From Ruditapes philippinarum (Eukaryota), in NCBI RefSeq assembly GCF_026571515.1, contig NW_026855528.1:310001-374000 (forward strand): 64,000 nucleotides of DNA. Reading direction: 5' to 3'. The notes under the pieces were generated by a model. That model ran no database searches. It was not told the origin of the DNA and worked only from the letters and a program-made list of their open reading frames with translations. A program made the translations under genes and the position numbers. Below, piece after piece: positions 1,072-29,774 of this stretch. How positions within the stretch are numbered: position 1 is the first letter of the stretch; the number at the start of each line of letters is the position of its first letter.

Positions 1072-4000
1072 ATGGGAATTTACTGTTTTATGTGCCTTCT
1101 ATGGTTTATTAGAGGTATCTACACTTCTATTGTATCTTGAACAGAATACTTTAAATATGTAGAATGACTTTTTGTCCCATTATATTCCATGTATGTTTAA
1201 TTCAAATTATTTTCAAGATAAATATAAAAAGTTGTTTTTTATAGCTTTGAATGTTCCAGTAAAGAGAGAAATTAGTTTAAGCATATACCTTTTGTAATTG
1301 AATTTTAAATAAGTCATCTTAAAGATATACTATGCTCAATTTTGATATATTTCAAAATATCAATAATTGCTACATATTTTCTAATTCTGTAATTGTAAAA
1401 CGAACATGTGTTAAATTAACATAGAGTAGACATGTCACGTTTAGAACTCTAAAAACTATAAGTAAACATAATATGAATACATACCGGCAGTTCATTACAA
1501 AATACTTTTTTCAGTAAGTACAATCTTAGCTTGACTTGTTAAAAGGAATGCTGTATCCCTGCGTTCTTTTGTTCAAATTAGACATCATCATGATTTTTTT
1601 TTATATTTTATCACGGATTTATATTACATTTAAAAGATATGTATGGACATCACATGTAGGTGACATAGTGCTAAGGATATTAATTTGATCCCTTTACAAA
1701 AGTGATTAAACATTACTACTCTTCTGATCCTTGTTGTATAAAAAGCTATGAATTCGGTATCGCATGCATGCATTATTTCATCTGTTATCACATACTTTGT
1801 TATCACTTCAATATATACATTATAAATGAACATTAAAATGTAAATCCGTGATTTCATTAATTTCTGTAATGAAACAATTTTATTCCCATATTGGCATAGT
1901 ATATCTTAAATTGTATGATATTATGCACAAATATATACATATGTTATACATATTTTCAATCAAAGTTTTAAACTGCAATAGCTTGACGCTGTGTGTAATG
2001 ATACAGTTTGATAGCAGGATGAATGTGATTATGTTGATTCTCAAACATTCCACTATTAGGTCCTCTTAAATCTTGATTCTGTTCTATATGTCTGATATAA
2101 TAAGGCAATTATTTTTTCAGGCACTCAGTGTAAATCATTTTGTGGACCCAGAACAATACCTAGTACGTATAGTTTAGTAAATGTAAGACTTAAAAAACTA
2201 GCTATTTTCCATCTCAGCAGACAATCATTATCATTTAATTTTATACAAAATTAGTAAGAAGTAAACTACATTTCCTGTAAAAGGAATTGAAAATTAATGC
2301 TTCTCTAATTTGTGAACGGTTTCAATAGTTTATAATGTAAAGGAAATTAAAAATGTTCCTTTAATAAGTCACTGATTTTTATGTCAATTGTTCAAATAAG
2401 ATTTGTATTATTGTTGACCTAATCTGTCACGACTGTTGATCTTTTTAACATTGATTTAATAAAATGGCAGAATATTGATGCATTGAAATGGTTGTGGCGT
2501 AGTTTTCATATATTTCCGGAAAACCTGGTGTATGTTAGTTTACATAGATTAATCGAGAAAATGAAACTGTATGTAGCCTACGTTTAGATATTCGACATAT
2601 AACTGTCTAGTGGAGGTCTTCTCAAGTTATATGGAGTTGCCCAAGTTTGACCCAGTGACTGAGTTCATGACCCTATATTTTTTCAAACTTATCACTAAAT
2701 TGATTTTAATCTATTCTGTCTTCAATATGTGAGGCTAAATCTTTATTTCTGATGATTAAAATCAATAAATTCATGTTTATTATCTCAATAAAATGCTTTT
2801 GTCGTTATAATGAGGAAATGTCGGAAGTCTTGATATTTGAACGATTTAATAAATTATTCTTCCCGAAAGTTTATATTGTAAATGTTACGAAGTCAAGTTT
2901 CTATTTTGGTTATGTACAATGCACACACAGGAAGTTTAAAATAGAAGATAAGAATGGCTATATTTTTTAATATGATTGAAAAGAATCATGAAAGCATATA
3001 TTTCTATTCATAATAAATATTTAAAAATGAGAAAAGCTGGCAGGCATAGTTCTTGTACAGTGTCGATGATCATTTACATGGTCTTCTGCATTTATGTTCA
3101 CCCGAGCATTACATATCCGTAAAGATATTCACCTCTGTAACATCGAAAACCTGAGATATGGAATACTTTGAAAATAGCCTATTTCAGTTTCACATTTTCT
3201 TAATCAAACTTTTTAACTTTATTTAAAGGTTTATAAAACATTTCTTAAGGTACAGCGTTTTACACTTAAAAACGCGCACGGGGCACTTTGAACAATGTTA
3301 AGTTAATAGATTTTGTTAAAAAGTTCATGACACACTCAGACAAAGTTGTTACTTCTAAATCATGCAGACACTTCAATCAAGTGTTTACGAACGATTTGTT
3401 TTCGATGACTTAAAATGTTTCATGATGGTGTTAAAATATTATCGTGAACGATCTACAACAGGCATAAGTGGAACATGGGTTTGAGGTAAAACGATGTGCT
3501 TTAAGAGATCGACGACAAGGAGAGGATATTGCTGACATTCTTGGTTTCAGTCACGGAGTCGTAATATTATTTAAATATACAAAGTTCTACCCAAGTACGT
3601 TTCTCTGCTGTTGACAAGTGAAAATATTATTGAATAGAACAAAATAGGAATTCATGAGGCTATAGGAGAAGGTCGTTGATATAGTTCTAGCCAGCCTTAT
3701 CACGCATTTACGCACGCAAACACGCACCAACAAACACACACACACGCACCAACACACGTACGTACGCACGCACGCACGCACGCACACACACACAGACACA
3801 CACACACATACACACACAAACTGTGTTTAATTTAATGGCCCCTAAGGCAAAGGCAAGCCGTCATTGTTCATGGTTTGGATACACAAGTCGTCTCGATCAC
3901 CTTAGAAAGCAAGGGCTACAAAATCATCCTAGTATAGTCTCGATCACCTTAGAAAGCAAGGGCTACAAAATCATCCTAGTATAGTAGAAAGTGACAAATA

Positions 4001-7000
4001 TTTGCAGTAAGTGTAACGTCATTTAATCGACGACGCCAGATGACGTTCCAATGTGCCCCGTGTACTCGATAATGTATGCGCAATAATAAACCTCGTGTAT
4101 TTATATTTTGTTCATTTATTCAAATGTTTACAACATTAAACGATTTAACATTACATCTTTCCTGTCGTATACCGATATCTTTTTCTCAAGTTTCGCGCCG
4201 TTATAATGGATAATCGCTTCAGTCCGGGAACTTTCTGACTATACCGCGTATTAGTGTCAAAAAAGGAAATACTTATGCTCAACCGATTTTCATGTCTATC
4301 TAAGTTATTTTGTGAAAAAAATGTCCCTTTACCTACAAAACAAGCTGTGTAAAATTTACCAAACATATGCATTATCTCTAATTTACCTTATAATACAGAC
4401 AATACAATTATTTTGATAAAACAAACTGTGTTCATTTGAGCTCCTGTCATACACACTTTGATAACTTTAATTTGTTTGCTTATCCTATAAAATGAAACAT
4501 TTTCTCTTTTTGGTTTAAATTTGTAACTTGAATAAGACAGATGAAACAATCTACGATCATTTTCTTACAGTTGTAAATATCTGCACAGATCACTTAGTAG
4601 AGCAATCAAACTACATCCTTATTGATACAGCAAGTGTTCAAGATTTCCAACAAACGCCATGTGAATGTGTTATTTTAACAAATAAACAAGAACTTGAAAT
4701 CACTTTGTTGTTAGAAAATTCCACTCAAGTGTTCAACATGGAATTTGAAATAAACGAAACTGTCATAAACAATATCAAACATTATTATCCTACAAGGATT
4801 AAAAATGGTACAACAATTTCATTTTCAACTGATAAAAATCACAAACGAGATGGTGCGTGTCTCGGTGTTTTTTCAAGTAAGTATTCGTCACACATAAGTA
4901 TAAAATTAACAGTGTTACTTTATTATAATGTTTTACAGTTTTGTTGGCTTTGTTAATGTGCATTGTATATCTTTCATGATTATTTAGTGTTTGAAATGAA
5001 AAATACAATAGGATTCAGCTTTAAAATTATGTTATGCATATTTTATTTATTTCGAAGATTATAAAATTCCATATTTCAGGAATTAAATTTTGATAATGAT
5101 AATCGTATTTTCAATAATTTGCTGTTTTCTCGTTTCTTTAGAGGATCAATCAAAGTTCAGTATTGCTTGTAATAAATCAACTCTAAACTCAAACCAAGGA
5201 AAAGAAAGCGAGGGAAATGAAAACACAAGTCCGAGTAAGTTAAAACAGACTTATTTGACAAGATAAAAACTGTTTGTGATTGTCTTTATTTTAACATTTT
5301 ACATATTGTCTCCGAGGATATGTATTAAAAGTCTAAATAAAATATCTAAATGATATGTCAGCAATTCACAAAGACATTCGAAAGGTCTTAAGCGTCAATT
5401 TTTTTCCTATCCAGTTTTTAATTTTTTTTTTTTGACAAACATGTTAAGTAAGTATTTTAATTGACATTTTACCCATCCAACTCAAGTGTAAATGGGGAGT
5501 GTATACAAATGTAGGTAAGTCTCAAAATAACTTGAAATGTTTAATTTTATATTTTAATAGGAAAAAATAATAAAAAATAAACGCGGCTCTCGGAAATTTT
5601 CTATACTTATCGCTCGGGATATATCGGTAGCGTTTAATTTACAAAAAATAGGCTAAGGTAGTTTTTGTATATTATCCTGAACATTTTTCAATATCAATCA
5701 TTGTTCAATCGCTATTATTACAGTCACGGTTTTGAAATATATTACTTATTCCGCTGAACTTTACATGATTTATAGAAATGGAATACTTTTAATATTTTGT
5801 ATAATTTACAAATGAAACACATTTTATTATTTATATTTTTCAAATAAATCGATATTTATTTTGTTCTAAAATGATATATGTTTATGAATTACAAGATAAC
5901 AATAACCTTAACTAATCTTCTATTTCATATAAACATATTTCATGAGTTGTCAATTCATTGATATGTAAGAAGTAAATATTTTATTATTTAATAGCAATTT
6001 AAAATAAAAACTAATAAATTAAACTAATTATTTTGAATGTACTTAACATATATTTGATGGTTTGATTCATAACATTAAGGGGTGAAGATGGAATACCACT
6101 TAAGCCGGTATCAGGGGTCGTGAGAGATGTTGCACTTTTCCATTATACCTAAACTAATTTTGTTTAGTTCACAAAGCACTATATCATATAACAATAGATG
6201 TGTAATAAAGAATCTTATGGAGACACTATCTTTTAGCATGAATCTGGACACTAAATATTGTAAAATTACATTTTTTGCGGGGGATAGAACTTTTTTCAAC
6301 ATTTCAGTTACGGAAGCAATGAAAGAAACAATACAATCCACTCCAGCATCCATATCAAATGGAAATGAAACAACCGAGCGTACAACTTTAAAACCTACTC
6401 ATTCTACGATGCAAGCTTTAACTGATAAAGTGGATGGAGACAACCATATTAAAAGTTTGTTTAAAAATACTTACGAGTAAATTTAAGAGTCATTTTTGTC
6501 CTAGTCACTAACTGTGCAAAACATACCCTTCTTTAGCAGTCAATCAAATGTAATGATTATCGTCTCTTGGGTTCTGTTGGTTTAACTGGACTGAATCTGA
6601 CAGATGATAAAATTAGAAATACTTGTTTAATTAAACATCAAAATCATGAATCAAAATGCGGAAAGTAGGTAATAACAGAATAATTTCTTGTCAATTTTGA
6701 TCATTCTGTACATACCTAAACAATAACAAAAATATTGACATTACATGAGTATCATATCCCATAGTCAAGTGTCTTAAGCCGATGCGTCAATCGAGATAGC
6801 CATCATATAAATGAGGCAGACTTTAATATAACTAACATAGTTTTTTGTTTTATAAAAAAAAAACATTTTTGAATATCATTCATTGTCCAATCTCTATTTT
6901 AAAAGTCACTCCTTTGAGAATTCTTTTCAAACATTTCATGTACGAAAATAACAGAAGAAACAACAAGACAAGCAAGCTCAGCATCTATATCACGTGGAAG

Positions 7001-8903
7001 CCAAACAACCGAGAGTACAACTTTAAAACATCTTTATTCTACGATGCAACCTTCAACGGATAACGTGAACGTCAACCCTATTATCAGTTTGTTTAAAACA
7101 TTACTTTTGAAGTTAATCTAGAAGTAAACATTTTTCTACTTATTACAGTCAACTCTACTTACAACGAGATCAGTTTTGACGAGATACTGCTTATAGAATA
7201 CATTCTACTGTGTCCCGGCCTTTTTCCTTCTATCTACTTTCTTGTTATATCGTTTATAACGAGATCGGTTTTAGCGAGATATCGGTTACAACGTCAATAT
7301 ATTTGATGTCCCATGCGTATTGTTTAGAATTTAAACGAGGACACTTCATTGGCACTTCGTCGGCATCAGTTTGTCATCTTGAGAAAAAAATGGTGACTTA
7401 AAACAAAAGACAATTAAGGAAGAAATTGAAATTTCTGAACAATTAGCGCCTTGTTTGTCAGCCCTACGGGCTAAATCGTCCTTTAGGTTACAAAATGTCA
7501 TAACAAAACAATTCTATTGAGTGATTGGCACAAAGGAAGCGACATATTTCTTGTAGTGTTATTCGCTGTTCGTGAGTGACTTTTGAAAACGAACTTTAAA
7601 ATGTACTTATTAATAAAAATCCAGGTTGTTGAACGTAGCATTATGTGTTTTCATATGTTTTGTTAAAATTCTATGATAACTTGATATATTTATATACATG
7701 TATGTTTAAATAAAACAAATACTGCTGAGTGCAAAGAGATATCTCGCATTTTATATTTTTTTAAAAAGGATGTTCTCGAAAGCGAAAGTAGAAATAAATG
7801 ATGCTCGATAGTGTCGGATTTCACAATTTGTAATGACCCGGTTAGAACGAGGAGGACAGTCTTGTTGTTTCTGGAGTGCACTTTATTTAAATATTGTGAC
7901 ACACAAAAAGCCTTTTTTTGCAATTCAAATAGATTAAACTATGAGCATTTACACTATCATTCCTGCAATATTTGAATTTTGTTCAAAACACATATTTTTA
8001 GTTTGAATAAAATTACCTTTATCTGTTTAAACTTCCAGTTCCTTCAGTGATAGCAGCTTGCGGACTTCTATGTTCAATTGTTATTGCTGTTGTATGCGTT
8101 ATCTTCTACATAAGGTAAAGTTAACTTACACTCGTACACTTACAAAAATGTGTTGAATTCTTAAATATTTTATGATAAGTTTAACATTGGCATATGGTTG
8201 AAACGTTAAAATTTATATGTTATCTTTTTTAATAAAACTAAACTGTCATAATGGCGTGAATGCAGTTTTGTGTACATAACTAATGAATAATAATGAATAA
8301 CGTAAATATACTCGTACTTTATAATAATGCAAAACTATTTTATCAATAAGCTAATTTTATTGATTTGTGAACATATATTCTGTTTTTTGTAGGAGAAAGA
8401 AAGGAAAGCGAAGAAATGCCACTACAGTAAGCTCCACAAACGCACCTGTAGAGAGTGACTATTATATGACTGAAAATGCGATGTACAATATGGGCCAGAT
8501 ATGCACGCGAGAAACAATCAATGAAAACGAACACAACGATGTTTACAATTATCACGGAGCATCCCCAAGCCATTATGATTGTATTCAAGACACAACTGGC
8601 AGAAACCAATCTTCTAAAAACTCACCAAGCCATGCTGTGTCAAACGAGTATTCAACGTGTCTAAAAGTAGGCAAAGGAAGTGATGTTGTCTCAAACAATA
8701 AACGGTCGATTATTGATAACGAAGTGCAACCAAAATTTTCAGGAATTAATGGAGACGATGACACAGTATATGACAGTACAGTGTCAACTTTTTCTCAGCA
8801 GACAGTCGGAGATAATGATTATCATCATTTGGGCTCTGTTGGTTTGAATGGACTGAATTTGACATATGACAGAATTGGAAATACTGGCTTAGGTAGACAT
8901 TAA
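1072..8903 (+). CDS. Receptor R1: uncharacterised type I membrane protein with six-Cys ectodomain, Ser/Thr stalk and Tyr-motif tail (about 405 aa)
   Basis: join(1072..1114, 2121..2162, 4571..4876, 5142..5234, 6308..6454, 8039..8114, 8393..8903). All introns are GT-AG, phases 1,1,1,1,1,2, total 1218 nt in frame. Signal MGIYCFMCLLWFIRGTQC; ectodomain SFCG..IVNICTD..YILIDT..CECVIL..GACLGVF..FSIAC; TM IPSVIAACGLLCSIVIAVVCVIFYI followed by RRKKGKRR; tail SHYDCI, TVYDST, NDYHHL, LTYDRI. Exon organisation matches three paralogs. Confidence 0.8.
3709..3817. repeat. (CA)n/(CACG)n microsatellite; shorter paralogous copy at about 15450-15495
   Basis: Directly visible; explains the spurious CV-repeat ORF 3587..3817. 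Confidence 0.95.
6510..6805 (+). pseudogene. Relic of the 3' end of a receptor terminal exon plus 3' UTR, inside an R1 intron
   Basis: Reads QSIKCNDYRLLGSVGLTGLNLTDDKIRNTCLIKH, versus the R1 C-terminus QTVGDNDYHHLGSVGLNGLNLTYDRIGNTGLGRH. DNA similarity continues into the UTR (ttcttgtcaattttgatcattctgtacatacct vs ttcttgtcaatattgattattctgttcatacct at about 8940). Confidence 0.8.
6940..7086 (+). pseudogene. Second, paralogous stalk exon with a mutated acceptor (possible cryptic cassette exon 6955..7086)
   Basis: Open frame TKITEETTRQASSASISRGSQTTESTTLKHLYSTMQPSTDNVNVNPII aligns with stalk exon 6308..6454 and has the same GTTTGT donor. The acceptor catttcag has become catttcat. An in-phase AG exists at 6953-6954 but has a poor pyrimidine tract. 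Confidence 0.7.
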
Positions 8904-12040: not shown

Positions 12041-12334
12041 AGTATCGTATCAAGATGTAAGTAACCAATTTTACAAATAATTCTATGCTTATCCTGGTTA
12101 TAGACAAAACGAAGCATAAATTACATTCTATGACAAGACGTTAAAAGGATGGTACCATTACAGTGTTTGATGACAAAAGTTAAGGTAGCAGGACATTGCA
12201 TGTTAGTGTTGCAAACACAGCGTTATATAACGAATTGTTACAAAATGACAGCTGGTATTGTAAAACAACCAACTCCCTTGCATAACACAGTGCAGCGTTT
12301 TGTTACAGACGAGCTAAATATAGGTACATAATTA

Positions 12335-15300
12335 TACATGTAAATGGAATTAGTCTATCATACAAATATATGAAATTAGTCGATCAAACATGTATATGAA
12401 ATTAGTCGATCATACGTGTACATGAAATAAGTCGATCAGAAGTCGTGATTATGTCGAGAAATCGATCGGACACTAGACGTTGGTATTGAGGTAAAGTCAG
12501 CCAAAACCAGTTTTGATATCAGCATGCTTAAAGTACGACATAGCACTGTTGTTCAAAGTCAAATGTAAACTTTATTATTCAATGTATGTGCTCAATGTCA
12601 GTATCTTGTAATGTTCTTTTTTTTTCGTTTTCTAACACATGTTTCACTAAATTAAATAACTTCTCTGTTAACTCAATTAACCTTCGTATACAGTAAATTA
12701 TGTTCTCAAATAGGTTTAATGATAATATCATATATACTTTACAACCGATCCTCAATCGATTGATAGATTTTCCGGTTTAGTTTACAATGAAACAATGTTA
12801 CTAAGAACAATTAATTTTATTTCCTTTTATTATTAACAATTTGAGGGTAACGTGAACTGTTTAAGGACAATATTTCCTTTTATAACAATCGGATTTATAC
12901 ATATATAATAATAATCATTTTATATTTTACTTCATTTAATTGGATAAACATCGGAATGGGAATTTACTGTTTTATGTGCCTACTATGGTTTATTAGAGGT
13001 ATCTACATATCTATTGTATCTTGAACAGAATACTTTAAATATGTAAAATGACTTTTTGTCCCATTATATTCCATGTATGTTTAATTCAAATTATTTTCAT
13101 AATAAATATAAAAAGTTGTTTTTTTATAGCTTGGAATGTTCCAGTTAAAAGAGAAATTAGTTTAAGCATATACCTTTCGTAATTCAATTTTAAATAAGTC
13201 ATCTTAAAGATATATTAAGCTCAATTTTGATATATTTCAAAATATCGATAATTGCTACATATTTTCTAATTCTGTAATTGTAAAACCAACATGTGTTAAA
13301 TTCACAAAGAGTAGACATATCACGTTTAGAACTCTAAAAACTATAAGTAATATACACAATATCAATAGATACCGGTAGTTCATTACATTTTTTTTTCAGT
13401 AAGTACCACCTTAGCAGTAAGTACCACCTTAGCTTGAGGACTGCTGTATCCCTGCATTCTTTTGTTCAAATAAGATATATTCATGAATTTTCTATATTTC
13501 ATTAATTTTGTCATGAAATAATTTTATTCACATATTGGCATAGTACTAGTTTATCTTAAATTGTATGATATTATGCACAAATATATAAGCCGCGTCACGA
13601 CAAAACCAACATAGTGCGTTTGCTACCAGCATGGATCAATACCAGCCTGCGTATCCGCGCAGTCTTATAAGGATCCATGCTGTTCGCTATCAGTTTCTCT
13701 ACTTGTAATAGAGTTGGTAAGCGAACAGCATGGATCCTGATCAGACTGGTCTGGATCCATGCTGGTCGCAAACCCACTATGTTGGTTATGTCGTGACGCG
13801 GCTCATATACATATGTTATACATATTTTCAATCAAAGTCTTATACGGCAATAGCTTGACGCTATGTGTAATGATACAGTTTAATTGCAGAATATTTTACG
13901 TTCCTGAGGATGAATGTGATTATGTTGATTCTCAAACACTCCACTATTAGGTCCTCTAAAATCTTGATTCTGTTCTATATGTTTGATATAATAAGGCAAT
14001 TAATTTTTTTCAGGCACTCAGTGTAGATCATTTTGTGGACGCAGAACACATCCTAGTACGTATAGTTAAGTGAATGCTAGCTAATTTTCACCTCAGCGAG
14101 CATAGAATGCAGACAGTCTTTATCATTTAATTTAATACAAAATCAGTAGGAAGTAAACTACATTTCCTGTAAAAGGAATTCAAATGCTTATCTAATTTGT
14201 GAACGGTTTCAATAGTTTATAATGTAAAAGAAATTAAAAATGTTCCTTTAATTAGTCATTGATTTTAATATCAATTGTTCAAATCAGATTTGTATTATTG
14301 TTGACCTAATCTGTCTCGACTTTTGATCTTTTGAACATTGATTTAATAAAATGGCAGAATATTGATGCATTGAAATGGTTGTGGCGTGGTTTTCATATAT
14401 TCCCACAAGTCCTGGTGTATGTTAATTTGCATAGATTTATTGAGAAAATGAAACTATGTACATGTATGTAGCCTACGTTTAGATATTCGACATATAACTT
14501 ACCAGTGGAGGACTTCTCAAATTATATGGAGCTGCCAAAGTTTGACCCAGTAACTGATTTCATGATTCAAAATTATAACTAAATCGATTTTTAATCTATT
14601 CTGTCTTCAATATGTGAGGGTAAATCTTTATTTCTGATGATTAGAATCCATAAATTAATTTTCGCACTTTTGATAAAATGGTTTTGCCGTTGTTATGGGG
14701 GAATCTCGGAAGTCTTAATATTTTAAAGATTCAATAAAATGTTCTTGCCGAAATTTTAGATTATAAATGTTACGAAGTCAGGTTTCTTTATTGGTTATGT
14801 ACTATGCACACACAGGAAGTTTAAAAATAGAAATTAAGAATGGCTATATTTTTTCATATGATTGAAAAGAATCATGAAAACATATATTTCTATTCATAAT
14901 GAATATTTAAAAATGAGAAAAGCTGGGAGGCATAGACAAAAAGTTCCTTTACAGGGTCGACGATACTTTACATGGTCTTCTGCATTTATGCTCAACCGAG
15001 CGTTCCCTATCCGTTAAGATATTCACCTTTGTAACATCGAGAACCAGAGATATGGGATACTTTGAAAATAGCCTATTTCAGTTTAATATTTTCTTTATCA
15101 AACTTTTTAACTTTATCCAAAGTTTTATAAAACATTTCTTAAGGTACAGCGTTTTACACTTAAAAACGCGCACGGGGCACTTTGAACAATGTTAAGTTAA
15201 TGTTAAGTTAATTGATTTTGGGCTTGCTGTAAAACGACGTGATTTAAGAGATCGACGACAAGTAGAGGATATGGCTGACATTCTTGGTTTCAGTCACAGA

Positions 15301-16870
15301 GTCATAATATTATAAAATATACAAAGTTTTACCCAAGTACGTTTCTCTGGTGTTGACAAGTGAAACTTTTATTGAAAAGAACAAAATTGGAATTCATGAG
15401 GCTATAGGAGAAGGTCGGCGAGATAGTTCTAGCGGGCTTTATCACGCATTCACGCACGCACGCACACACGCACACACACACACACACACACACAAACTGT
15501 GATCAATATAATGGCCCCTAAGGCAAAGGCAAGTCGTCATTGTTTATGGATTGATAACACAAGTCGTCTCGATCACCTCAGAAAGCAAAGGCTACAAAAT
15601 CATCATTAGTAGAAAGTGACAAATATTTACAGTAAGCGTAACATCATCTAATCGACGACGCTAAATGACGTTCCAATGTGCCCCGTTTACCCGACGATGT
15701 ATGCGCAATAATTAGCCTCGTGAATTTATATTTGTTTTATTCAATTGTTTACAGCATTTACATTTCATCTTATTGTCATATGATCAAATTTCGCGCCGTT
15801 ATAGTGGAACTATTGCCTCAGTTTGGAACTTCCTGACTATACCGCGTACACGTGTCAAAAAAGGAGACACAATGTTCGACCGATATTCAGGTCTTTCTTC
15901 TAAGTTATTTTGAAAAAAATACCTATACCTAAAAATAAAGATATGTAAAAATACCAAAAATATGCATTATCTCTAATTAACCTGATAATGAAGACAATAC
16001 AAATTTATATTTGATAAAAGAAACTGTTTACTTGAAGTTCTTGCTTTAAAGGCACAATTTGATATAACTTATAAAATTAAACATTTTCTCTTTTTGGTTT
16101 AAATTTGTAACTTGAATAAGACAGATGAAACAATCTACGATCATTTTCTTACAGTTGTAAATATCTGCACAGACGACTTAGTGGGGCAATCAAACTACAT
16201 CCTTATTGATACAGCAAGTGTTCCAGATTTTCAACAAACGTCATGTGAATGTGTTATTTTAACAAATAAACATGAACTTGGAATGACTTTGATGTTAGAA
16301 AATTTTACTCAAGTGTTCAACATGGAATTTGAAATAAAAGAAACTGTCATAAACAAAATTAAATACAATTATGATACAACGATTAAAAGTGGTACAAAAA
16401 TTTCATTTTCCACTCATGAAAATCACGAGCGAGATGGGGCGTGTCTCGGTGTTTTTTCAAGTAAGTATTCGTGATACATAAGTATAAAATTAACAGTGTT
16501 ACTTTATTATAATGCTTTTACAGTTTCGTTTGCTTTGTTCATGTACATTGTATATCTTAGATAACTATTTAGGGTTTGAAATGTTAAATACAATAGGAAT
16601 CACCTTTAAAATGATGTTATGCTTATTTTATCTGCTTTTGAAGATTAACCAATTCTTAAAAATACCATAATTCAGGAATTAATTTTTGATAAAAATAATC
16701 GTATTTTCAATAATTTGCTGTTTTCTCGTTTCTGTAGATGATCAAACTAAGTTCAATATTTCTTGTGTTAGATCAATTATCAACTCAAACCCAGACAAAG
16801 AAAGTGAAGGAAATGAAAACACAAGTACGGGTAAGTTGAAGCAGTTGACTTACTAGACAAGCTTAAAACT
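12335..16870 (+). repeat. Segmental duplication of about 435-5270 (upstream region to exon 4 of R1/R2)
   Basis: Collinear near-identity (roughly 90% by eye) across upstream DNA, introns and exons 1-4; similarity ends just after the exon-4 donor. Confidence 0.95.
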
Positions 16871-18643
16871 GTTAATGACTTAATATTATACACATGTTCT
16901 AATGGTGATAAATAAGAACAGATTTATCAAAGTTTGTCTATGTTTTTTCTCGTAAATGCACTTGACAATTATGATGAATTACAAGTGTGCCAAATAAAAC
17001 ATACTCGTCTTTGCATTTTAGCTAGTTGCTTTAGACGATGGTACGCGGATGAAAATGATTAAACATATATTTTCTAAAATTCATGAGTAATTGGAATAAT
17101 TTGTATACGTTACATAAATGCAATTTATTTTGTAAAGCAATCTAGTCAGCATTCTGTTTATGGCTTCTTTAGGGATTCCGTTTTCCTCTATTCTAATAAG
17201 CCCTCAAAATAATGTGGTTAAACATGCCTTTTTACTATGTTATCAATATAATTAATAATTCATGTATCTTACAAGAAAAAGAAGCATTTTACTGTAATAC
17301 CATTACCCATATTCATGCTGGGAGATTGTATTACATTTTATTCAAAATCATATATTTATAATCTTATATTTTCAGTTCCTGCAGCATTAGCAACTTTGAC
17401 ACTCGTATGTTGTTTAGCAATTGCTGTCATCTTCGCTATTTGTTATAGAAGGTATGACTTCGTCATGCACCAATGTACCAGATTTTTAATTTATATCATC
17501 CGGATTAACATGTAGCACATGAGTGGGTGATAGGTTCCCGCTTTCGATTTTGTCAGTAGTAACATAGTAAATGTTAAGAAACTTTTTAGCTTTTAGGATA
17601 TTTTAACTGTTCCCGTAAATATGAATCTTAATCAGAATAAAATCTCTTTTTTGACATTTTTATACTTGTCCTATATTCTTTTGTGTTTTAATTTCGATGT
17701 TCGACGTTTCAGGATTGATGTTCATTAACTGTGTTCAAAACAAAGAACAATTTATGATTACTTATATCTAATAATCATTTAATTAGATAAAATTATATTC
17801 TTATTCTTATAAACTGGAAACATGAACCTATAAGTGTTTATATAAAAAACAAATAACCAGTAGGAATTTATAGTATATCTTTATTATATAGAATGCATTT
17901 GTGGTTACTGTTCTGATGTGAAGTATTTTGATTCTGTTTACTTAAAAATAAACAAAAATCTCTCATATCATTAAAAAAAATGGCTGAAACACAAAACAAA
18001 TCACATATATTACAAATTAACAATTTCTATATCCGAAATGATTTATTGTTTTCCATATACAATAGCAAATAGTTATTTGTTATTAAATGTATAGTATGTT
18101 CTTTTTATCTAAATGACATATTTCATAGATGCATCTATTTGCATCTATTGCAGAAGACAAGCCGAAAGAGTAATCAAGCAAGAAACAAAACCATCTGTAA
18201 ACACAAGAACAGAAGGTGACAATTACATGACAGACAGTCAAAGGTGCAATAATGGTCAAAATTTTATGGTTGGTACTGTTATGGAAAACGAACACAGTGC
18301 GGCAATAGTTTCAGGCCATTATGAAAGTATTAAGGAAACAGCCGACGAACACCACCGCTCAGAACACTTACCTAAACATCCTGTATCCTACGATTATTTA
18401 GGGCACCCTCCGACTGGCGTGAAAATGGGAGCTGCAAGCAACAAAACCACAAATAACGATATTGAAGGCGAGCGTGACTTGTCAAGTTTAAATGCGGAAG
18501 ACCAGACGGTATATGACTGTACAAACGTAACATCACCTCAAAAGGCAACCGGACACAATGATTATGATCATTTGAGTCCTATTTGTTCAAATAAACTGTG
18601 TGATTTTGGTCTATATGATAAGGTTGAACAAAAAACTGAATGA
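12956..18643 (+). CDS. Receptor R2: paralog with no stalk exon (about 349 aa)
   Basis: join(12956..12998, 14014..14055, 16155..16460, 16738..16830, 17376..17451, 18154..18643) = 1050 nt in frame, all GT-AG. TM VPAALATLTLVCCLAIAVIFAICY followed by RRR; tail GHYESI, VSYDYL, TVYDCT, NDYDHL, LYDKV. Confidence 0.85.
13586..13805. mobile_element. About 220-bp palindromic MITE inserted in R2 intron 1 (probable TA TSD)
   Basis: Long inverted ends TAAGCCGCGTCACGACAAAACCAACATAGTG / CACTATGTTGGTTATGTCGTGACGCGGCTCA. The paralogous site in R1 (about 1930) is empty. A second copy is at 43111-43327. Confidence 0.9.
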
Positions 18644-19265: not shown

Positions 19266-20327
19266 TACGGTGGCACAAAGGTGACATGTGTGGGTTTTTA
19301 TTTATCTCGTGGCCACGACATACTATGTCGTGGCCACGAGTTACTAAGTCGTGACCACGAGATAAATAACCAATCAAAATACACTATATATAATAATATT
19401 ATTATGAATTTGTTAAACTTAACAACTTACTGTTACATGCAACATTAATCTTTGAAAATACTGAAGATATTCACTTTGAACTTGTCTTTAGGGTCATATT
19501 AGAAAGTCACCTTCCAAGGCCCAACAGACATTAATTTTGACTGTAGCCCTTTGTTTGGTCAATTTTGTGATCGAATTGATCAGTTTGTACGTAATACGAC
19601 CTGTTAACCTTGTTTATACAATAACATGAGAAGGACTTAGTCCTGGTTTATTTAATTTGGAAGGGACATTGCCCATTGACAGTAGATAGCCTATAAGGTA
19701 AAATCCTTGCCTGATGAATAACTGAGAAAGGATAAGCCATGGTTTATATTACCCAGAAAGATCATTGCACCTGATCAGTAGATGACATCTAATAATTATG
19801 GGGCCATTGGGTCAAAAATCAGGGTCACAGTGACGCTAAATGTAAACTTATTGACCAGTCAATAAGTTGTATAAATGGCACTTTTGCAGGCTTGTGAAGT
19901 AGGGGCATCCTTGTACTATAGCACATGTCTAGTTAATTATGGAAAATCATATAATAGTGTTATCTGATTGTCTCGTGGCCACGACTTAGTAACTCGTGGC
20001 CACGACATAGTATCTTGTGGCCACGACTTAGTTATCTCGTGACCACGACTTAGTAACTCGTGGCCACGACATAGTATCTCGTGGCCACGACATAGTATCT
20101 CGTGGCCGCGACTTAGTAACTCGTGGCTACGACATAGTATCTCGTGGCCACGACTTAGCTATCTCGTGGCCACGACTTAGTAACTCGTGGCCACGACATA
20201 GTATCTCGTGGCCACGACTTAGCTATCTCGTGGCCACGACTTAGTTACTCGTTGCCACGACTTAGTTATCTGGTAGCGACATAGTTTATCGTGGCGACGA
20301 GACACATGTCACCTTTGTGTCACCGTA
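19266..20327. mobile_element. Non-autonomous TIR DNA transposon with a 6-bp TSD (IS3EU-like termini TAC..GTA) and an internal 21-bp tandem array
   Basis: TIR TACGGTGGCACAAAGGTGACATGTGT / ACACATGTCACCTTTGTGTCACCGTA; TTAAGC on both flanks; array of CTCGTGGCCACGAC(T/A)TAGT at 19970-20300; nested Helentron-type fragment ending GGGGCATCC..ACATGTCTAGTT near 19935. Confidence 0.85.
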
Positions 20328-20334
20328 TTAAGCA

Positions 20335-20931: not shown

Positions 20932-23900
20932 ATGGGAAATTGTCGTATATTACTGTGTGCTGTTTGTCTTCTTTGGTTTTCAAGGAGTAAGTTTGAATAT
21001 TATACGTGTATCTAAATATCAAAAGAATTTTAAAATATGTGTGGTAATTTATGATAATTTAGGAAAGTATGCTAATTAAATGGCGGATGAATATGTGTCC
21101 ATTTCGTTTTTAATGTGATCAAGCAAATGTCATGTACTTTTTTAAATGAGTTGTGTTCTCTCTTTCTCGTTGTTGTAATTTTGTTGTGATTAACGTTTCC
21201 GAGGGGTCACACTTTATCCAGATTTTTAAACTTCACAACAACAGGTGTCAAGTGCTGTGTTGCAGCTGTAAGATGTTGCATTTTACTTCACTTCTATGTT
21301 GTTCCAACATTTTAAGGGTTGAAAATTGAGTACCCCTAAAACCGGTGCTAGCTATGGGGCTACACTTTTTCTTTATTCACCATGTACAGACTCAATGAAA
21401 CCAAGTTTGCAATGTCCATGTATTTTTGTTGTGATTTATGATTCCTAGGGATCACACTTTATTCAGACTATATTTTTTAAAAAAAGGGTTGAACTAGGAA
21501 CATATGAAGACTGAATAATCACCGATCACATTGCCTTTCAAATGAAGATATGCTTTAAACATGAGAAAATAGTTGACCATAAAAGACACACCCAAACAAT
21601 GCTTGATTAAGCGACCGGTTCGACCCAATTTGGTGCTAATGTAAAGCAGACTCTATTTAGAATCTGCATGATTATTGTTCTGAAAGTTTAAACTTCATAT
21701 AAACAATTTTACGATACTTACGGTTCTGACATCTTTTCATGTAGCTATGAAGTAATTATCAAGATAATTATCTTTCAGTAACTCACACGGAATCATTCTG
21801 CGGACAAAGCAAGCAACCCAGTATGTAACGTGATCATTTCATTTCTCTTAAAATATAGGTTTTTCGTACATTAACATCTTCAGAAACACGAAGAAACATT
21901 TTAAGCGCGAGGGCTTTTATCAGTACAATGTCTTCTGCAAATCTGCACAAAAATGTGCATTAGCTCCGGTCTTGCATAGATGTACATGTATATACATGTA
22001 ACTGATTTGGTATTTCCGAGTTTCGTTATTTCTGGCTCTTATGATTAAATCGTTTTTTTTTTTTCATGTTTTTCACGTGCTAGTGCGATACCATTTGATA
22101 TGTCTACCGGGGCTGTCATTGTTGTAGGTGAGTTGGTTTTACTTGGCGCCCTGAGTCACGCATATTTAAAGACGCGTGCTCGTGTGATTTTCCGTAAATG
22201 ATGATTTCTTCTCCGGTAATGAACATCATTTTGACAACATATTTAAACATCATTTTGACAACATATCTCAATATAATAAAAAGGTTTGAAATATATATAC
22301 AAAAAAATGTGTTCATTACAGTCGTAAATATCTGCACTGACTACACAGTGAGTGAAACCCATTATATCCTTATTGACACCAGAAATGTACCCGTGCTTCA
22401 ACAAACATCGTGCAAATGCGTTATATCACCTGCTAGACAAATTATTACATTAGTTGTGCGGATAACAAATCACACTGGAGAAACGAATATAAAATTTCAA
22501 ATAGCAAATATTTCTGTAACAGAAAAAGTTTTCCCTAAACACCGAATATCTGGGGATACAGAGCTATTATTATCTACTGATTCAAGTTTTAACGGAGGTG
22601 GTGTTTGTCTTGGCGTTTACACTGGTATGTATGTAAAACTTTTTTTTTTAAGAAATGTACCTTTTGGTGAAACTTCATACTGTTTTAGAAGTTCAGAATA
22701 ATACTCTAAAAAAATCGTCTTAATAAGATTTTGTTTTTATTGACGTTTTATTGCATTATAATACAAAACCAATTGAATGACTGCTACTATTAAATGCTTT
22801 TGTTTTTTAAATGTCATGGATCTTATTTTTCGGAAATATGTTTATCTAAAATTAATGTAATATATAAAGAAAATGTTTTTCAACAAGAATTATGGGAAGT
22901 TTTTGTAACTTGTTTATATATTTGTGTTCTTCAAACTAAAGATCAATGACAAAAGTGAATTTGATGGACTATTTTTGACACATTGACGCGAGACAATCAC
23001 AATTATTGTGAAACGTTTACAGGATAAACATATTTAAACTGAAACTAATATTTTTATCTCATCCTTGAAGTTATTGGTCTTAAACTATTAACCTTTATGT
23101 ATGACAATATTCCATATATTAAATGTTTGACAACTATTGCTGTTTTATAGTTAATGGGACATTGTTCAACATTATGTGTACGAAATCAGCAAGACAGGCA
23201 TCAACATCACAAGGTATTGTAACACAACCATTTATCTTTACTACATTTCTAATATCTTTTCAACACATTTCAACAGTCATTGATAACGCTATTAAAAGAA
23301 TGTTAACACAATTTTTTTTTGGTTTTATATCATAAATATGATGCTCAAATTAAGATTTATCAATTTTGTAAGTTCCAAAAAGCATTATTTATAAAGATAT
23401 TACCGAATTTAACATTTCATGTAAATAATGGGAGGTAATAAAAAATATTTTCTATAAAGTCTATGTCAAATTTTTCAATAATTATTACCTGAAAGCATAT
23501 ATATTTTAATAATTACATATAACATGTTAAAAATATTTGCAGTACATATGTTACATATTCTTCGATGTTTGAAAATTGTTTTATAAGCATAATTATAAAC
23601 ATATATATAATTTCACTTAAGTGTAGTATACAACCTCAATTACAACATAAAGAAGGAAATAGCCAAAAAAGTAGTTGAGTAATTTAATTTAACTAGTTTT
23701 CTTTAAACGCTTTTAGCTTTCGTTATTTCGTTAAAAAAGCCAACAAACAAATGACATTAAAAAAGAGAATAAATAAATAAAATAAATAAAGAAAAATAAT
23801 TCAAAAAAAAAATTAACGTGATTTAAGATGTTTCTTTCAAAGAATTGATGTCAACATTCAACAATGGTTTGCATTACCATTAAACAAGTCAGTAAACGAG

Positions 23901-25545
23901 AGGTATGAACGGGATAATGTTTGTTTTTTTTTTTTGTATTTTTCAGGTCTTATAGTGTCTGTAATATTTGGGGTCGTATGTTTCCTAGTCATCGTTTTCA
24001 TCAGCGCTATTTACTTCAAAAGGTATCTTTACGTCATGTTATATATAAGTATCGTTAAAGCGGCCTTAAACTTTTCTCCAGGCCAAATATGTTATGGTTA
24101 GATAAATCGTTTCATATAATTGTCAAATCAAAAGAATAAAGGTGAAAAAGAAATCTGCAGTTGTTAAAGCACATAAACAAAAAGAGAATTCATTGACACC
24201 CTGATTAAGTTACTGAAATACTTAGCTTGAAACATCACGGAATTGTTTTTTCCAACAAAAAATAAAGATGAAAGCCGTTTTAAATATCACCTAAATACGG
24301 AGTATGAGTGGTTTTATAAAACATTTTAAACGTATGAACTATGTAAAAAACATCTGGAAACAAAGTGATCCCTCGGAAGCATTAATCACAACAAAATAAC
24401 ATAAGAATTGCAGACTCGGTTGTAAGTTTTGCTCTAAAAAAATAAAATATCATGAGCAATGAAAGACAATTGTAATCTAAGAACCATTTGAGACTTCAGT
24501 TATCGTCCACCTAATATTTCCTTTATAATCAATGTGCTTCAACGCTTTAGGCTTCGCCTTCGGTAGTTAATTTGTATTTGACTGCATGTGATACTCAGTT
24601 CCCTATTTGTTGTATTTGTTTATCTTTACTGTATTTCTTCATAATAAGCATCTGTTAAACTACCTTACAGTAAAACATAATTTGCAAAAATATGTACTAG
24701 AATTGTATTAAATTGAACTAATGTAATATATGTACCGTTTAATCTTTGATTGAGAAAGAGCAATACTTTCAGTTATTGAAAATAAGAACATTATAAACAA
24801 CTATAGCTAAAATACAAATGTATTTCAAAAAGATTATTTCTAATATTCCTATGCCCGTATTGGATTTATAACATAGTTATAACTCATACAAAAACTCATA
24901 CTTGGATATTGTTAGTAATTCTTTAACTTCCATTTGTTGTCTTTAAAATCTAACATATACTTCTGGAGTCATGGAAGAGGCTTGAGACGAGTTTGATATT
25001 GTATTATTTATTGTAGACGCAGAGCGGAAACAAAAACAAACTCCACTACAGGTCACTGTACAAGCACAAGAGTAGAGAGTGAAAATCGTTTGATAGAAAA
25101 TTCTGTTAATGATAGGAATCCGACTTGTATGATAGGATCTAGCGAACATAATAATGTTCAGTACAACAAGCAGAATGAGGAGACAGTAGCAAGTCATTAT
25201 GATAGTATCCAGGAATCAACAACAGACGGAAATCTCTCTTCAGAAAACCCAACAAATCATGTTGCGCTGTACGACCATGCCATATGCCATTCACAAGGCC
25301 AAGCAATTGCTGATCTCTCAAACAATAAAACACCAATTAAAAATATTGAGGACCAACAAAAATGGCCAGGTTTAGAGGCTAAGGATGACACAGTTTATGA
25401 CAGTACAAAAGCTATGCCTACTCAACAGGCAATCGTTCATAATGATTACGATCATTTGAATGATGTTTGCCTTACTGGGAAGAGTCTAACATATGATACT
25501 GTTATGAAGGTATCCAAGGAGCCTCAGACAATAACGCCAAACTAA
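20932..25545 (+). CDS. Receptor R3: older paralog (about 355 aa)
   Basis: join(20932..20986, 21779..21820, 22322..22624, 23151..23213, 23947..24022, 25017..25545) = 1068 nt in frame. Signal MGNCRILLCAVCLLWFSRITHT; SFCG..IVNICTD..YILIDT..CKCVIS..GVCLGVY..FNIMC; TM GLIVSVIFGVVCFLVIVFISAIYF followed by KRRR; tail SHYDSI, TVYDST, NDYDHL, LTYDTV. The 42-nt exon 2 and 76-nt TM exon are the same length as in R1/R2. Confidence 0.85.
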
Positions 25546-25589
25546 AAATACTCAGAATCTTGAGACTCAGTAATACGTCTACCATCAGA

Positions 25590-25810
25590 TCACCGCTGTG
25601 TGTTCGAATCCTTACATGGAATTTGGAGTTTTTAATGTGATGAAACAATCCAACCAGCCCACAGAACGTCGGTGGTTCTACTCAAGTGTCCATCTATTCG
25701 TGCCTGCCTAAAATAATGCACGGTAGGGCACCTGATGTCTTCTTCCATCAGCAGAGCTAGAAAGTCGCCATATGATCTATAATGTGTGAGTGCGACGTCA
25801 ACCCGAACTA
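25590..25810 (+). mobile_element. tRNA-derived SINE (Meta-SINE-like core) in the presumed R3 3' UTR
   Basis: B-box-like GTTCGAATCC followed by the core GTCGGTGGTTCTACTCAAGTG..AAATAATGCACGG..GGCACCTG..GAAAGTCGCCATATGA, recognised from memory as a molluscan SINE core. Confidence 0.65.
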
Positions 25811-26678
25811 ATAAAAGCATCAGGTCAAATAAATGTGAATTTATCAAACAATTAAGAAATATTTGATAGTATTGCTGATGTAGATAAAATGGACAGACAC
25901 AGTGAAGTGAAATACTAATGCTGTGCCGCTTAAACAAGTCATGAATTTCATCATTTCTGTACTATTGAATTATTGAAACCAGAAATGTTAAAGATATGTA
26001 TAATACTTTTGAAAGCATAACGAACAGTTGCAAAAATAAATGGTAAAGATGATATATTAAAAACAAATGAAAACTGTGCTAATTACCTTTAAAAAAACGT
26101 ATGAATTGTTTTGTGAATAAGCGGCATATACACACCCTTGTGCTGTTTTGGGAAGTTGTTTCTATGCACATGTTATTATGATTCTTTTTTTATTTCATGT
26201 TATAATTCATTATGTCGCATATATTCATAATCTGGTAAGAGTTTACTTGCGAATAGTACTTTCACCGTCTTCATCAATACACTTTCTGTTATTGATTTGT
26301 CACACATTATATTGTATTATCGTTTCTGCTTAACGATTCAAATCAGGGTGTTTAATTTATTCATTGATTATTGTAATTATTCATAAAATCATGACGATAG
26401 GTTATTTGCTATTAAGTAAGAGAACGCGTCTTGCCTTCCGCATGTGCATCACAAGGTGTATTTTATTACTTAAATACTTGATTGAATCAATTAGAGATTA
26501 AAGTTTTCAAATATATTGATCAGATGATTTCTTAATATCCAAATTTTATTTCAATTCTGTTTTTCAAAAATCACTCCGAAAATTGATTTATAATGTTATT
26601 TTTTAATTGGAGATATTATCATTATAGTTAGAATGTATACTTGTATTACATTTCAAAACATGTTGTCTAAGACGTTTA

Positions 26679-29600
26679 TCACCTAACGTTTGCTATGTGA
26701 TAACCAGGTTCATCCCCACTTTCACTACACTCACTTTGTCTTTTACCACCCCTTTCTATCGTATGGTAGGCTTCCAAAACTTCCTCCCTCTTCAATGTCC
26801 CTGGATTTAAATGATGATAATCGTTTACCCCTATGATAAGAGTAGCCTGACTTTTTTCTAAATTGTCATACATGCTATCCCTGGCTATCAACTTTTGTTT
26901 TTGAACTATCCCCTTGTTAGTATGCGCCGCAATCATATCATTATTACCAACATCTGTTTTATCTCTGTCTATTGTGAGGCAACTAGAGTAGTCGTAGTCA
27001 TCATCTAGTGTGGCTTGTATACGATGTTTATTGTCAGCTTCACAAGAGGGAATTTCATAATAGCTTGCCCGATTGTCGGCATCAAATTTATCTATGTAAT
27101 TATATTCATGTTCAGTCTGAGGTCTGTTTGAATGAATTGCAACTCCGTGATCCCCTGACATATAAATAGATTTCTCATAAAGTCTGCCTTTGCTACCGTT
27201 TTGTGCACGGGGTTGTGTTGTATCCTGAATCCATCTCCTGTTATGTATAGAGAGAAAAATGTTTGAATGATATTTTTGTTTAAATAAAATATAGGAATAT
27301 ATGAAAGATTGTTTCGTATAATTGTTATGCATAAATCGTTATGCCTTAATTACATGCTTTAATTTCTTTTCCAGACCAAAAGGCTGATAAATAGCACATA
27401 TACACGTATATCATGAATGTCTATCATGAAATGAAATTGATTAATACCCTGGTCGAAATTTGACATTTAATCTTTCTAAACAATAGTTTACATGTTGGAT
27501 TCATTTCAGTTCAGATAAAATTTCAAACAGACGTAAAAATCTAAACAGTAACAGCTTTGCTTTATTTAATTTTAACTTACTTTTTGAGGCAAACAATAAC
27601 ACATACCACAATAACCAAACAAACAAGACCACATATTGAACCAACTAATGGGTCTGAAAAGAAATGTTTTAAGATGTGTACTAGCATAACATTTTGGTAT
27701 CTGTAACTAGTATGATGTCGAAAGCTTGTACATTTACTTTTACTGATACAATGAATAGAAGTTGACTCAAGCATATTCGATATTTGAAATTGCTTATAAA
27801 GTTAATACAATGACATTATAGAAGCTTACATATAAATATATCATTCAAATACTTATTGTACTCTAAGTCGTAACAAAAGAAAGAATTCGCATCTGATGAA
27901 AAACATACAGATAAATGATTTTCTTGAAGAGTCCGTTTGTCCTGTCGTTGAAACTGTTGAGTTGCCATATGTTGTTGAAGATTTAGGCGAAGAGAATGCG
28001 CTAGTTTCTATGGAGTCAGATGTTGTGGATATTCCTGATGTGAAAGTGCTAATCTTTGTTGATGTAAATAGTATGTTTCTCATACAACTTATGCTAAACG
28101 ACGATGCTAAAGAACAAAAAATGGAATAAAATAGTATTGTCTTATTCATTTGTCAAAATATACAATTATAAACTTGCTTAAAAAGCTGGCATTCTTCACG
28201 TATCTCACTGATTTACGCAAACATTAATAACTTGATTATAGTACTTTATTGATTGTTTTCTGCTACAAGTACTAGAAAACAATCTTCATTGAAATCATTG
28301 GAATAATTTGGAACTGTCCGAACTGTTATTTGTGTAACGACGCTGGCAGAACGTCATAAAACTCATAATGAGCCTTGCAATATGCAAAATCTAAAGGTGG
28401 TGAATTAAAATATCGGAAAGTATCCCATATATAAGGGCATAAACCACTCTCTGTTGTCAGCTTGCTTTCCACCGACAGGATTTGTGTGACTTAAAACGTT
28501 ACACCTGCAAACCTAACAACCCCAGGTATGCCTAGACCCTACCTAACCGTATGATTTAAATCCATCGTATTCAGTTCTATATAAAGATGTTTAAGTAGCA
28601 TATATAATTCTTAACATTAAAAACCAGACTTAATATTGTCACAGTAAATGCACAATTAGCGTCATTTAGTCATAGTCTATTAATGGGCTGTGGTGTTCAC
28701 TATTTCGTCATCAGATTGATAATAAGTTAGCATTTATTTATACATGAGGACGAGTATTGGTGCCTGTAAGATTTGGCTAGTGTACCAGAAAATCTGTTTT
28801 TGGGTATCTGTGTCGGCGTGAAACATATCCTTACTTTTTATAAACGATGCTATACTCGTAATGCAATAAAACTACACATAGATAACATTTTTGAAACTAT
28901 TACAATAGTATATTTAATTCTTAGGCACCTTAAATTTATTTCAATTTTTCATGGTATTAAGAAATTTATAACAAAATATTTGTTTGTTTTTTTTTCAAAT
29001 TTATTATCTGATTATTTGAAATTAATTGTCAGAGAAAATAGATTTCATGCATTTCTTCTTTACATTTAAAAGAAGTATCCGTTACTATACCTGAATCGCT
29101 ATCGCTGCAGTATCTGCCTACGACACATATATCTGCAATATGATAAGATCTACTGTATTTAAACTTGCAAAAAGTTGAGAAATCGGATTGAATTTCAATG
29201 TTCACAGAAAAAGAACTTTCGTTTGTTTGCAAAGACCTTATCCTTTCTGAATCATTTTCAAGCCAAGTATATACCTGCTTGTCTGTTATAAGGACACATA
29301 GGAAAAGTATGTCCCTTTTGAACCATTAAAACAGAAAAAAGCTATGTATTCGAAATTCAAAAGACTGAAAACATCTTCTGTCAAATTTGGCATTGGCATT
29401 TTTGTTCTGCAAATTTCCTAAATTACCTCATAAAACCTAAGGCAAATCCTTTTAAAATATACTGGTTTTATGACACTTTGAATGCATAGGGAAATATGTT
29501 ATATAAATAGACTAATAGACTATATATGACTTTCCAAAAGACATTTGCTGACATATGGATTTCTAATCATTTATCATTTTACGTAAAATTTAAGGCTTAT

Positions 29601-29774
29601 AGTCGTTCTTAAACAATCTAGATTTTAAATGTATTAAGTTTTTAATCATTCCGAACATAAGGTAAGAAAATAATATGGTTGTTTTGATATTTTTTAAAAA
29701 CAGCAAATACGTAGTTACTTACCGAGATGTATTAATCCAAGTAAGGAACATACCATGATGATTGTGTTTGCCAT
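26679..29774 (-). CDS. Receptor R4: inverted, divergent paralog (about 357 aa if the decayed exon is skipped; may be a pseudogene)
   Basis: complement join(29723..29774, 29091..29282, 27909..28106, 27581..27653, 26679..27237) = 1074 nt in frame. Signal MANTIIMVCSLLGLIHL; FSISC followed by a Ser/Thr stalk; TM PLVGSICGLVCLVIVVCVIVCL followed by KKR; tail SMYDNL, NDYHHL, AYHTI. The last three exons are secure; the 5' ectodomain exon is less certain. Confidence 0.65.

Follow-up and report, generated by a model that had tools for sequence, protein, structure and literature searches.

A tandem array in the Manila clam genome that probably encodes mollusc CUB-like type I receptors with tyrosine-motif tails

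What do four neighbouring genes of the Manila clam, Ruditapes philippinarum, encode, when they share a single-pass plan and a tyrosine-bearing tail and belong to no recognised family? The genes, here R1 to R4, occupy positions 1072-29774 of the window, the 64,000-nucleotide stretch of DNA that was analysed (C4015:310001-374000 of the 1.41-Gb assembly, GC content 27-36%), whose encoded proteins match RefSeq proteins of R. philippinarum exactly. We think it probable that they form the distal end of a tandem array encoding mollusc CUB-like type I receptors with tyrosine-motif docking tails. A preliminary description made from the letters of the DNA (the sequence-only reading) had proposed an unnamed tandem family of four tyrosine-motif surface receptors, serving as candidates for immune or self/non-self recognition. 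Bivalves have no adaptive immunity and carry huge lineage-specific receptor expansions, and we know of very few bivalve tyrosine-motif receptors that have been characterised.

R1-R4 were rebuilt by splice-site logic at the positions which that reading had given, with exons searched singly and joined only for a check of frame continuity (Table 1). All 25 exons are open and have AG/GT splice sites, and no frame is interrupted before its stop, giving proteins of 449 amino acids (aa) from eight exons in R1, 349 and 355 aa from six exons each in R2 and R3, and 357 aa from five exons in R4. Codon base 1 is the last base of signal and ectodomain exons, and codon base 2 that of the transmembrane (TM) exon, which measures 76 nt in R1-R3 (73 nt in R4) and precedes a single tail exon of 490-559 nt. 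The proposed strands and phase plan, and the TM exon of 73-76 nt placed before one large tail exon, are therefore borne out. In six frames the genes appear as fragments, namely three plus-strand copies of a Cys-containing exon of about 100 aa (4519-4953, 16103-16471 and 22198-22698; 38-84% identical) and three plus-strand tail open reading frames (ORFs) that are 34-39% identical among themselves, and hydrophobic 19-mers give one TM candidate per gene, including the minus-strand one at about 27600. The predicted topology is type I: a signal peptide leads the chain, the ectodomain exons contain N-glycosylation sequons, and the TM helix is followed by basic residues.

RefSeq offers an independent view of many of these junctions. 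R3 is XP_060588165.1 (isoform X1) exon for exon. The joins from the core ectodomain exon of R1 (e3) through e4 and both stalk exons are identical to those of XP_060588164.1 (181 aa), a model that begins at a Met within e3, ends in the intron past stalk 2 and is without signal, TM segment and tail; we infer the remaining R1 joins. The stalk, TM and tail joins of R4 are those of RefSeq XP_060588169.1 (268 aa), which starts at a Met within the stalk exon, so that the signal exon and the 63-aa ectodomain exon of R4 fall outside the RefSeq coding sequence. About half of the junctions thus have independent support, the others being supported by open frames, canonical sites and paralogy. The four genes are real.

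That the four are paralogs, as first proposed, holds in full for R1-R3 and for R4 in part, the similarity being far beyond chance. Against the family profile described below, the E values of the R1-R3 ectodomain exons are 1e-34 to 1e-39, and the core exon of R2 is 80% identical in aa to that of R1, the two tails being 34% identical and the R2 tail lying closest to that of a unit at C4015:271.7k (55%). The ectodomain exon of R4 found no match to the profile (E 1.3) and has no other copy in the clam genome, and on these two counts it was ruled out as a homologue of the family domain. Scored against a profile of nine R1-3-type tails, the R4 tail reaches 27 bits, whereas the maximum over 200 shuffles of it is 6 bits; over about 145 residues the alignment stays collinear and pairs the tyrosine blocks, and XP_060590547.1, a clam protein whose ectodomain is canonical, has a tail end 37.5% identical to the R4 one. 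All three family features (a profile-matching ectodomain exon, a phase-2 TM exon and a collinear tyrosine tail) are present in R1-R3 (3/3), and R4 has the TM exon and tail only. Since its tail is homologous and its ectodomain exon is not, R4 is a member by its TM and tail half, with a predicted N-terminal half that is divergent or degenerate. A word-indexed protein search returned a tail 43% identical to that of R4 from another source and otherwise just self or near-self matches. Logan/ENA records hold a canonical e3-type ORF and this R4-type tail, both recorded from a 6043-nt contig; if the two pieces belong to one gene, the normal partner of the R4 tail type is a canonical ectodomain.

How widely is the ectodomain distributed? 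A profile of 109 positions, built from 23 clam exons and searched against 1.84 billion representatives, matched 45 proteins at E <= 0.001. All of the organism-named matches are molluscs (Ruditapes, Mercenaria, Mactra, Mya and Haliotis), and the rest, from ENA, Logan and JGI/IMG, carry no organism. The proteins are named 'uncharacterized', 'hypothetical' or 'mucin-5AC-like', and the automatic UniRef name of one Mya protein is 'CUB domain-containing protein'. The result agrees with the initial view of the family as unrecognised and lineage-specific, and supports a restriction to molluscs as far as the organism-named matches go. Among the relatives, Mercenaria XP_053398116.1 has three FN3 repeats, the family domain and a TM helix, and XP_046363232.2 of the abalone Haliotis rufescens has four tandem family domains, mucin stalks and a TM helix; Mactra KAL4232490.1 (1351 aa) looks like several neighbouring genes merged.

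The fold of this ectodomain is predicted to resemble a CUB domain. AlphaFold2, run on R3 with a 43-sequence alignment, gave a beta-sandwich over residues 30-145 at a predicted local distance difference test (pLDDT) score mostly >90, a TM helix over 154-184 and a tail below 50; the R1 core exon folded alone reached pLDDT 73. In the ESM Atlas, the nearest five matches that carry a Pfam family are all CUB families, at scores of 0.76-0.79, which is below the trust level. Six cysteines are conserved over three exons, as FC in e2, IC..x25..CxC..x63..CL in e3 and FxIxC in e4, a pattern that departs from the canonical four-Cys CUB spacing (C1-C2 and C3-C4 disulfides). No Pfam family covers ectodomain or tail in the window exons and ten full-length relatives, where scans returned TM-region noise only, nor was a CUB model found for them at E <= 1; the family profile matched no PDB sequence, and so no CUB chain. 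Membership of Pfam CUB (PF00431) was rejected, there being no significant CUB profile match. We would read the modelled ectodomain as a CUB-like jelly roll of about 130 aa with six cysteines; membership of the CUB family is not established. Pfam scans of R1-R4 gave no catalytic domain, in keeping with the sequence-only reading.

The tails are 160-185 aa long, predicted to be disordered and non-catalytic, and nine array tails align over the blocks VE[SG]D[YN]YMTEN[AP]MYN, ENEH, HY[DE]..I[QK]E, D.TVYD[SC]T, QQA.G.NDY.HL and [TL]YD[KRT][IV], separated by variable sequence. Five to six tyrosines keep their position, in DYYMTEN[AP]MY (a relative of NPxY), HY[DE]xI, TVYD[SC]T and the terminal NDYxHL-x11-13-Yxx[IV], so the tyrosine-based tails first proposed are seen here as conserved collinear motifs. 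The block order is the same in R4 and XP_060590547.1, collinear blocks occur in Mercenaria as well, and the Mya proteins have the terminal pair. This pair resembles an immunoreceptor tyrosine-based activation motif (ITAM) and stands at a homologous site with a spacer of 11 in R1 and R3 and 13 in R2 and R4, an arrangement expected by chance in 2-8% of shuffled tails. A regex search for the canonical ITAM (YxxL/I-x6-8-YxxL/I) found it in 0/4 of the R1-R4 tails, and on these spacers it was rejected; a loose x6-12 definition fits R1 and R3 only. Hexamers of the inhibitory type (ITIM, [SIVL]xYxx[IVL]) number two each in R1 and R3 (SHYDxI and LTYDx[IV]) and one each, placed elsewhere, in R2 and R4, and at position -2 of HYDxI the array tails have either S or G. 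NPxY was absent from the R1-R4 tails by regex, R1 having NAMY; the homologous site carries NPTY in the 271.7k unit, and NPMY in XP_060590547.1 and Mercenaria XP_053398001.1.

The family is far larger than the four members first proposed. Every exon type was mapped after C4015 130-310 kb had been added to the window, and the array on this contig comprises at least 13 units in about 180 kb, head-to-tail, of which R1-R4 are the distal end and R4, at that end, is inverted. Its 13 e3 exons (160.7k-332.6k) are all on the plus strand and open and keep the conserved cysteines in 13/13; 11 tails, also all on the plus strand (array 160.7k-335.5k), include one partial and one split over three frames. Genome-wide copy number, which the sequence-only reading had named as a check, comes to at least 54 matches of the e3 core exon, clustered on more than a dozen contigs. 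At least five further R1-like units, 80-92% identical in nucleotides, lie on the unplaced contigs C13874 and C6741, where one C6741 e3 is frameshifted and one C13874 e3 is without a conserved Cys; at this identity they are either divergent haplotypes or further paralogs. The R1-like unit u302 (C4015:302,400-306,700), which lies a short way upstream of the window, has a stalk-relic-stalk arrangement, an open e3 and the tail split over three frames, and is likely a pseudogene or an assembly error. Unit u280 (C4015:280,600-282,900) has e3, stalk, tail relic and stalk, but between these and the following unit neither a TM exon nor a complete tail was detected; this member may be truncated or secreted.

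Local tandem duplication adds units to the array, which also exchanges 5' (ectodomain) and 3' (TM and tail) halves between units and loses units by frameshift, an outcome that matches the birth-and-death evolution of clustered genes first suggested. The block common to R1 and R2 takes in upstream repeats, promoter, e1-e4 and introns, and the similarity stops just 3' of e4; within it the flanking-intron divergence K is 0.13 and the e3 synonymous divergence (dS) 0.16. In a maximum-likelihood tree of the 13 e3 exons of C4015 neighbours group together, as (u165, u200, u225, u251), (u280, u286) and (u266, (R2, (u302, R1))). The tail tree joins R2 to t271 (support 100/99), so that R2 goes with u266/t271 in both trees, and it pairs the R1 tail with t288 at 82% identity, whereas the e3 exons of R1 and u286 are 35% identical. 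Because the e3 and tail trees disagree, R1-type genes look chimeric, with a 5' half of R2/u266 type and a 3' half of u286/t288 type. A stranded relic of an R1/t288-type tail end lies inside R1; it shares 62% aa identity with the final 34 residues of the tails of R1 and t288, has lost the second tyrosine of the terminal pair, and belongs to a stalk-relic-stalk module found also at C4015:282.3k and 304.5k. Pairwise Nei-Gojobori estimates on e3 of seven R1-like units gave ratios of nonsynonymous to synonymous divergence (dN/dS) of 0.33-0.89, with dS of 0.05-0.33, similar to the flanking-intron divergence of 0.09-0.29. No pair among these units exceeded 1; constraint on e3 is weak and positive selection is not demonstrated. 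Tandem repeats of 26 bp (435-589 and 12334-12438) mark the 5' edge of the duplicated R1/R2 block.

Taken as docking receptors, the proteins would be type I membrane glycoproteins built of signal peptide, six-Cys beta-sandwich, optional Ser/Thr-rich stalk, TM helix and tail. The CUB-like ectodomain would bind a ligand, Src-type kinases would then phosphorylate the tail tyrosines, and the phosphorylated tail would serve as a docking scaffold for SH2/PTB proteins, resembling ITAM/ITIM receptors, Draper/MEGF10 or CDCP1. Bivalves encode Src-family, Syk and SHP homologues. Several points weigh against this proposal. Phosphorylation and SH2/PTB docking are only suggested by the conservation of motifs, and the terminal-pair spacer of 11-13 is beyond the 6-8 of a canonical ITAM. 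In 43 members no Pfam CUB model rose above cut-off, one weak match to a CUB variant (PF23061, E 0.016) aside. The RefSeq R1 model stops within the intron that follows stalk 2, and therefore R1 may be mainly a truncated product or poorly expressed. Lastly, the R1 joins e1-e2-e3 and stalk 2-TM-tail, all R2 joins and the 5' exons of R4 are predicted from sequence logic and paralogy.

A more specific reading would make these proteins haemocyte or epithelial immune or allorecognition receptors, whose varied ectodomains sense pathogens or conspecific cells, including transmissible-cancer cells, and whose ITAM/ITIM-like tails signal. A clustered, lineage-restricted, copy-rich family that is turning over would fit, as would an e3 dN/dS that is high for a coding exon, an ITAM-like pair at one site in all tails, ITIM-consensus hexamers in every tail, and the analogy to GRC/PTC2 of Biomphalaria, where single-pass genes without a known domain are clustered (PMC7494358). 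However, dN/dS exceeds 1 in no pair, the canonical ITAM is absent and some of the ITIM-type hexamers stand at non-homologous sites; our literature search found no paper on these loci, and no Biomphalaria protein stands among the organism-named matches. We consider this reading possible, if on the unlikely side, and the immune or self/non-self role that the sequence-only reading put forward is plausible but unsupported. Its boldest form, in which heterodont clams would recognise non-self through a polymorphic system whose mix-and-match CUB-like ectodomains, set on long-spacer ITAM-like tails, sense pathogens or foreign conspecific cells, strikes us as decidedly unlikely; if true, it would be a new non-Ig, non-lectin immunoreceptor class with relevance to transmissible neoplasia in Mya, Mercenaria and venerid clams.

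The same predicted CUB-like fold and tyrosine-rich non-catalytic tail could describe non-immune adhesion or developmental scaffolds of the CUB-receptor type (CDCP1, DCBLD2, Neto, Kremen) or fast-evolving proteins by which a broadcast spawner recognises gametes. The spermadhesins belong to the CUB proteins, the Mercenaria member that joins FN3 repeats to the domain has an adhesion-type architecture, and fast divergence without dN/dS > 1 fits many reproductive and adhesion families. There is, however, no sequence similarity to any of them, and core developmental receptors do not usually form big tandem arrays with pseudogenes, so that such roles seem to us unlikely. It should also be considered that a large part of the array is decaying DNA, in which only a few units such as R3 are functional, with R1, R2 and R4 as transcribed remnants or incipient pseudogenes. 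The truncated RefSeq models of R1 and R4 (the latter without signal peptide), the relic inside R1, the frameshifts in the u302 tail and in the C6741 e3, and the Cys lost from the C13874 e3 are what decay would leave behind. Set against them are the full complement of open exons with canonical sites in R1-R4, the open e3 exons of the contig with their cysteines kept, a dN/dS below 1, and tail tyrosine motifs conserved against a poorly conserved background; such decay is in our view highly improbable. Docking receptors with a CUB-like ectodomain thus stay our preferred account.

Comparison with known systems places the array more closely. CUB-bearing single-pass receptors such as CDCP1 and DCBLD2/ESDN share the type I topology and a non-catalytic multi-tyrosine tail, possibly acting as a kinase-dependent scaffold. 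The cysteine pattern of the CUB domain differs from that of the clam genes, however, and CDCP1/DCBLD2 have multi-domain ectodomains where the clam genes have a single domain, with tail motifs unrelated in sequence. Like LILR/KIR/Siglec/CD300, Hydractinia Alr and Draper/MEGF10/Jedi, the clam genes are clustered, duplicating single-pass receptors without a catalytic domain. Their C-terminal YxxL ... Yxx[IV] pair recalls ITAM/ITIM receptors and the engulfment receptors that combine ITAM and NPxY, and the Draper/MEGF10/Jedi-type NPxY has a membrane-near counterpart in XP_060590547.1, the Mercenaria proteins and the 271.7k unit (NPMY/NPTY), with NAMY in R1. Unlike in those receptors, the clam ectodomain is not Ig, EGF or lectin, and the tyrosine pair is more widely spaced. 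Binding of Syk, SHP or Ced-6 and activating/inhibitory pairing are features of the known receptors, with which the clam tails were compared by motif only.

The nearest precedent within the molluscs is the GRC/PTC2 regions of Biomphalaria glabrata, polymorphic clusters of single-pass (TM1) genes that control schistosome resistance, with 166-530 codons, no known domain and low identity between paralogs (PMC7494358). The likeness lies in mollusc-restricted clusters of domain-less single-pass genes; homology to GRC/PTC2 was not detected, the organism-named family-profile matches including no Biomphalaria protein. None of these analogues is detectably homologous to the clam family by sequence comparison, and the literature search found no paper that names these loci or combines bivalve, CUB domain and immunoreceptor tyrosine motifs. 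Clustered non-catalytic tyrosine-motif receptors are a known kind; the mollusc-specific CUB-like domain is the new part.

For now the array is one among many uncharacterised single-pass clusters of mollusc genomes. Nevertheless, the family supplies a concrete gene set of at least 50 copies, in which domain and motifs are defined and which has orthologous groups in Mercenaria, Mya and Mactra; it is open to tests of ligand recognition and phosphotyrosine signalling in commercially important clams. Such clams suffer from Vibrio, Perkinsus, quahog parasite unknown (QPX) and transmissible leukaemia. In addition, the recombination of ectodomain and tail halves between tandem units can be followed cleanly in this array.

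Table 1. Genes, exons and duplicated segments of the array, in window coordinates (e2-e4, ectodomain exons; TM, transmembrane)
Feature	Position	Strand	Basis or remark
R1 gene, RefSeq LOC132743635 (partial model)	1072..8903	+	Open 449-aa frame, ATG at 1072
R1 signal exon	1072-1114	+	
R1 short Cys exon (e2)	2121-2162	+	
R1 CUB-like core exon (e3)	4571-4876	+	
R1 Cys exon (e4)	5142-5234	+	
R1 stalk exons 1 and 2	6308-6454; 6955-7086	+	
R1 TM exon	8039-8114	+	76 nt
R1 tail exon	8393-8903	+	
R2 gene	12956..18643	+	Open 349-aa frame, all AG/GT; stalk exon absent
R2 exons before TM	12956-12998; 14014-14055; 16155-16460; 16738-16830	+	
R2 TM exon	17376-17451	+	76 nt
R2 tail exon	18154-18643	+	
R3 gene, RefSeq LOC132743636	20932..25545	+	Residue-by-residue map of XP_060588165.1 and XP_060588166.1
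R3 exons before TM	20932-20986; 21779-21820; 22322-22624; 23151-23213	+	
R3 TM exon	23947-24022	+	76 nt
R3 tail exon	25017-25545	+	
R3 alternative first exon (isoform X2)	22100-22127	+	XP_060588166.1 map
R4 gene, RefSeq LOC132743638 (5'-shorter model)	26679..29774	-	Open 357-aa frame, ATG at 29774
R4 signal exon	29723-29774	-	
R4 63-aa Cys exon	29091-29282	-	
R4 stalk exon	27909-28106	-	FSISC motif and mucin-like stalk
R4 TM exon	27581-27653	-	73 nt
R4 tail exon	26679-27237	-	
Block common to R1 and R2	400..5260 vs 12300-16850	+	82-97% nt identity; repeat families D2, D5-D8, D10-D20
Stranded relic of R1/t288-type tail end	6537..6665	+	In R1 intron between stalk exons; 3'UTR-like sequence to ~6850

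Several repeats lie between the genes. A 170-bp tandem repeat of 2.8 copies separates R1 from R2 (11517-11992). Between R2 and R3 a 21-bp tandem repeat with a palindromic core (CTCGTGGCCACGA) runs to 14 copies (19971-20271) and has an inverted three-copy partner about 650 bp upstream (19303-19364), the pair looking like a foldback or miniature inverted-repeat transposable element. Directly 3' of the R3 stop codon is an element of about 180 nt resembling a short interspersed nuclear element (25632-25810), for which a first look at the genome gave >2000 candidates, with 40 scored matches 78-82% identical; the 101-aa minus-strand ORF at this position is probably an artefact of the repeat.

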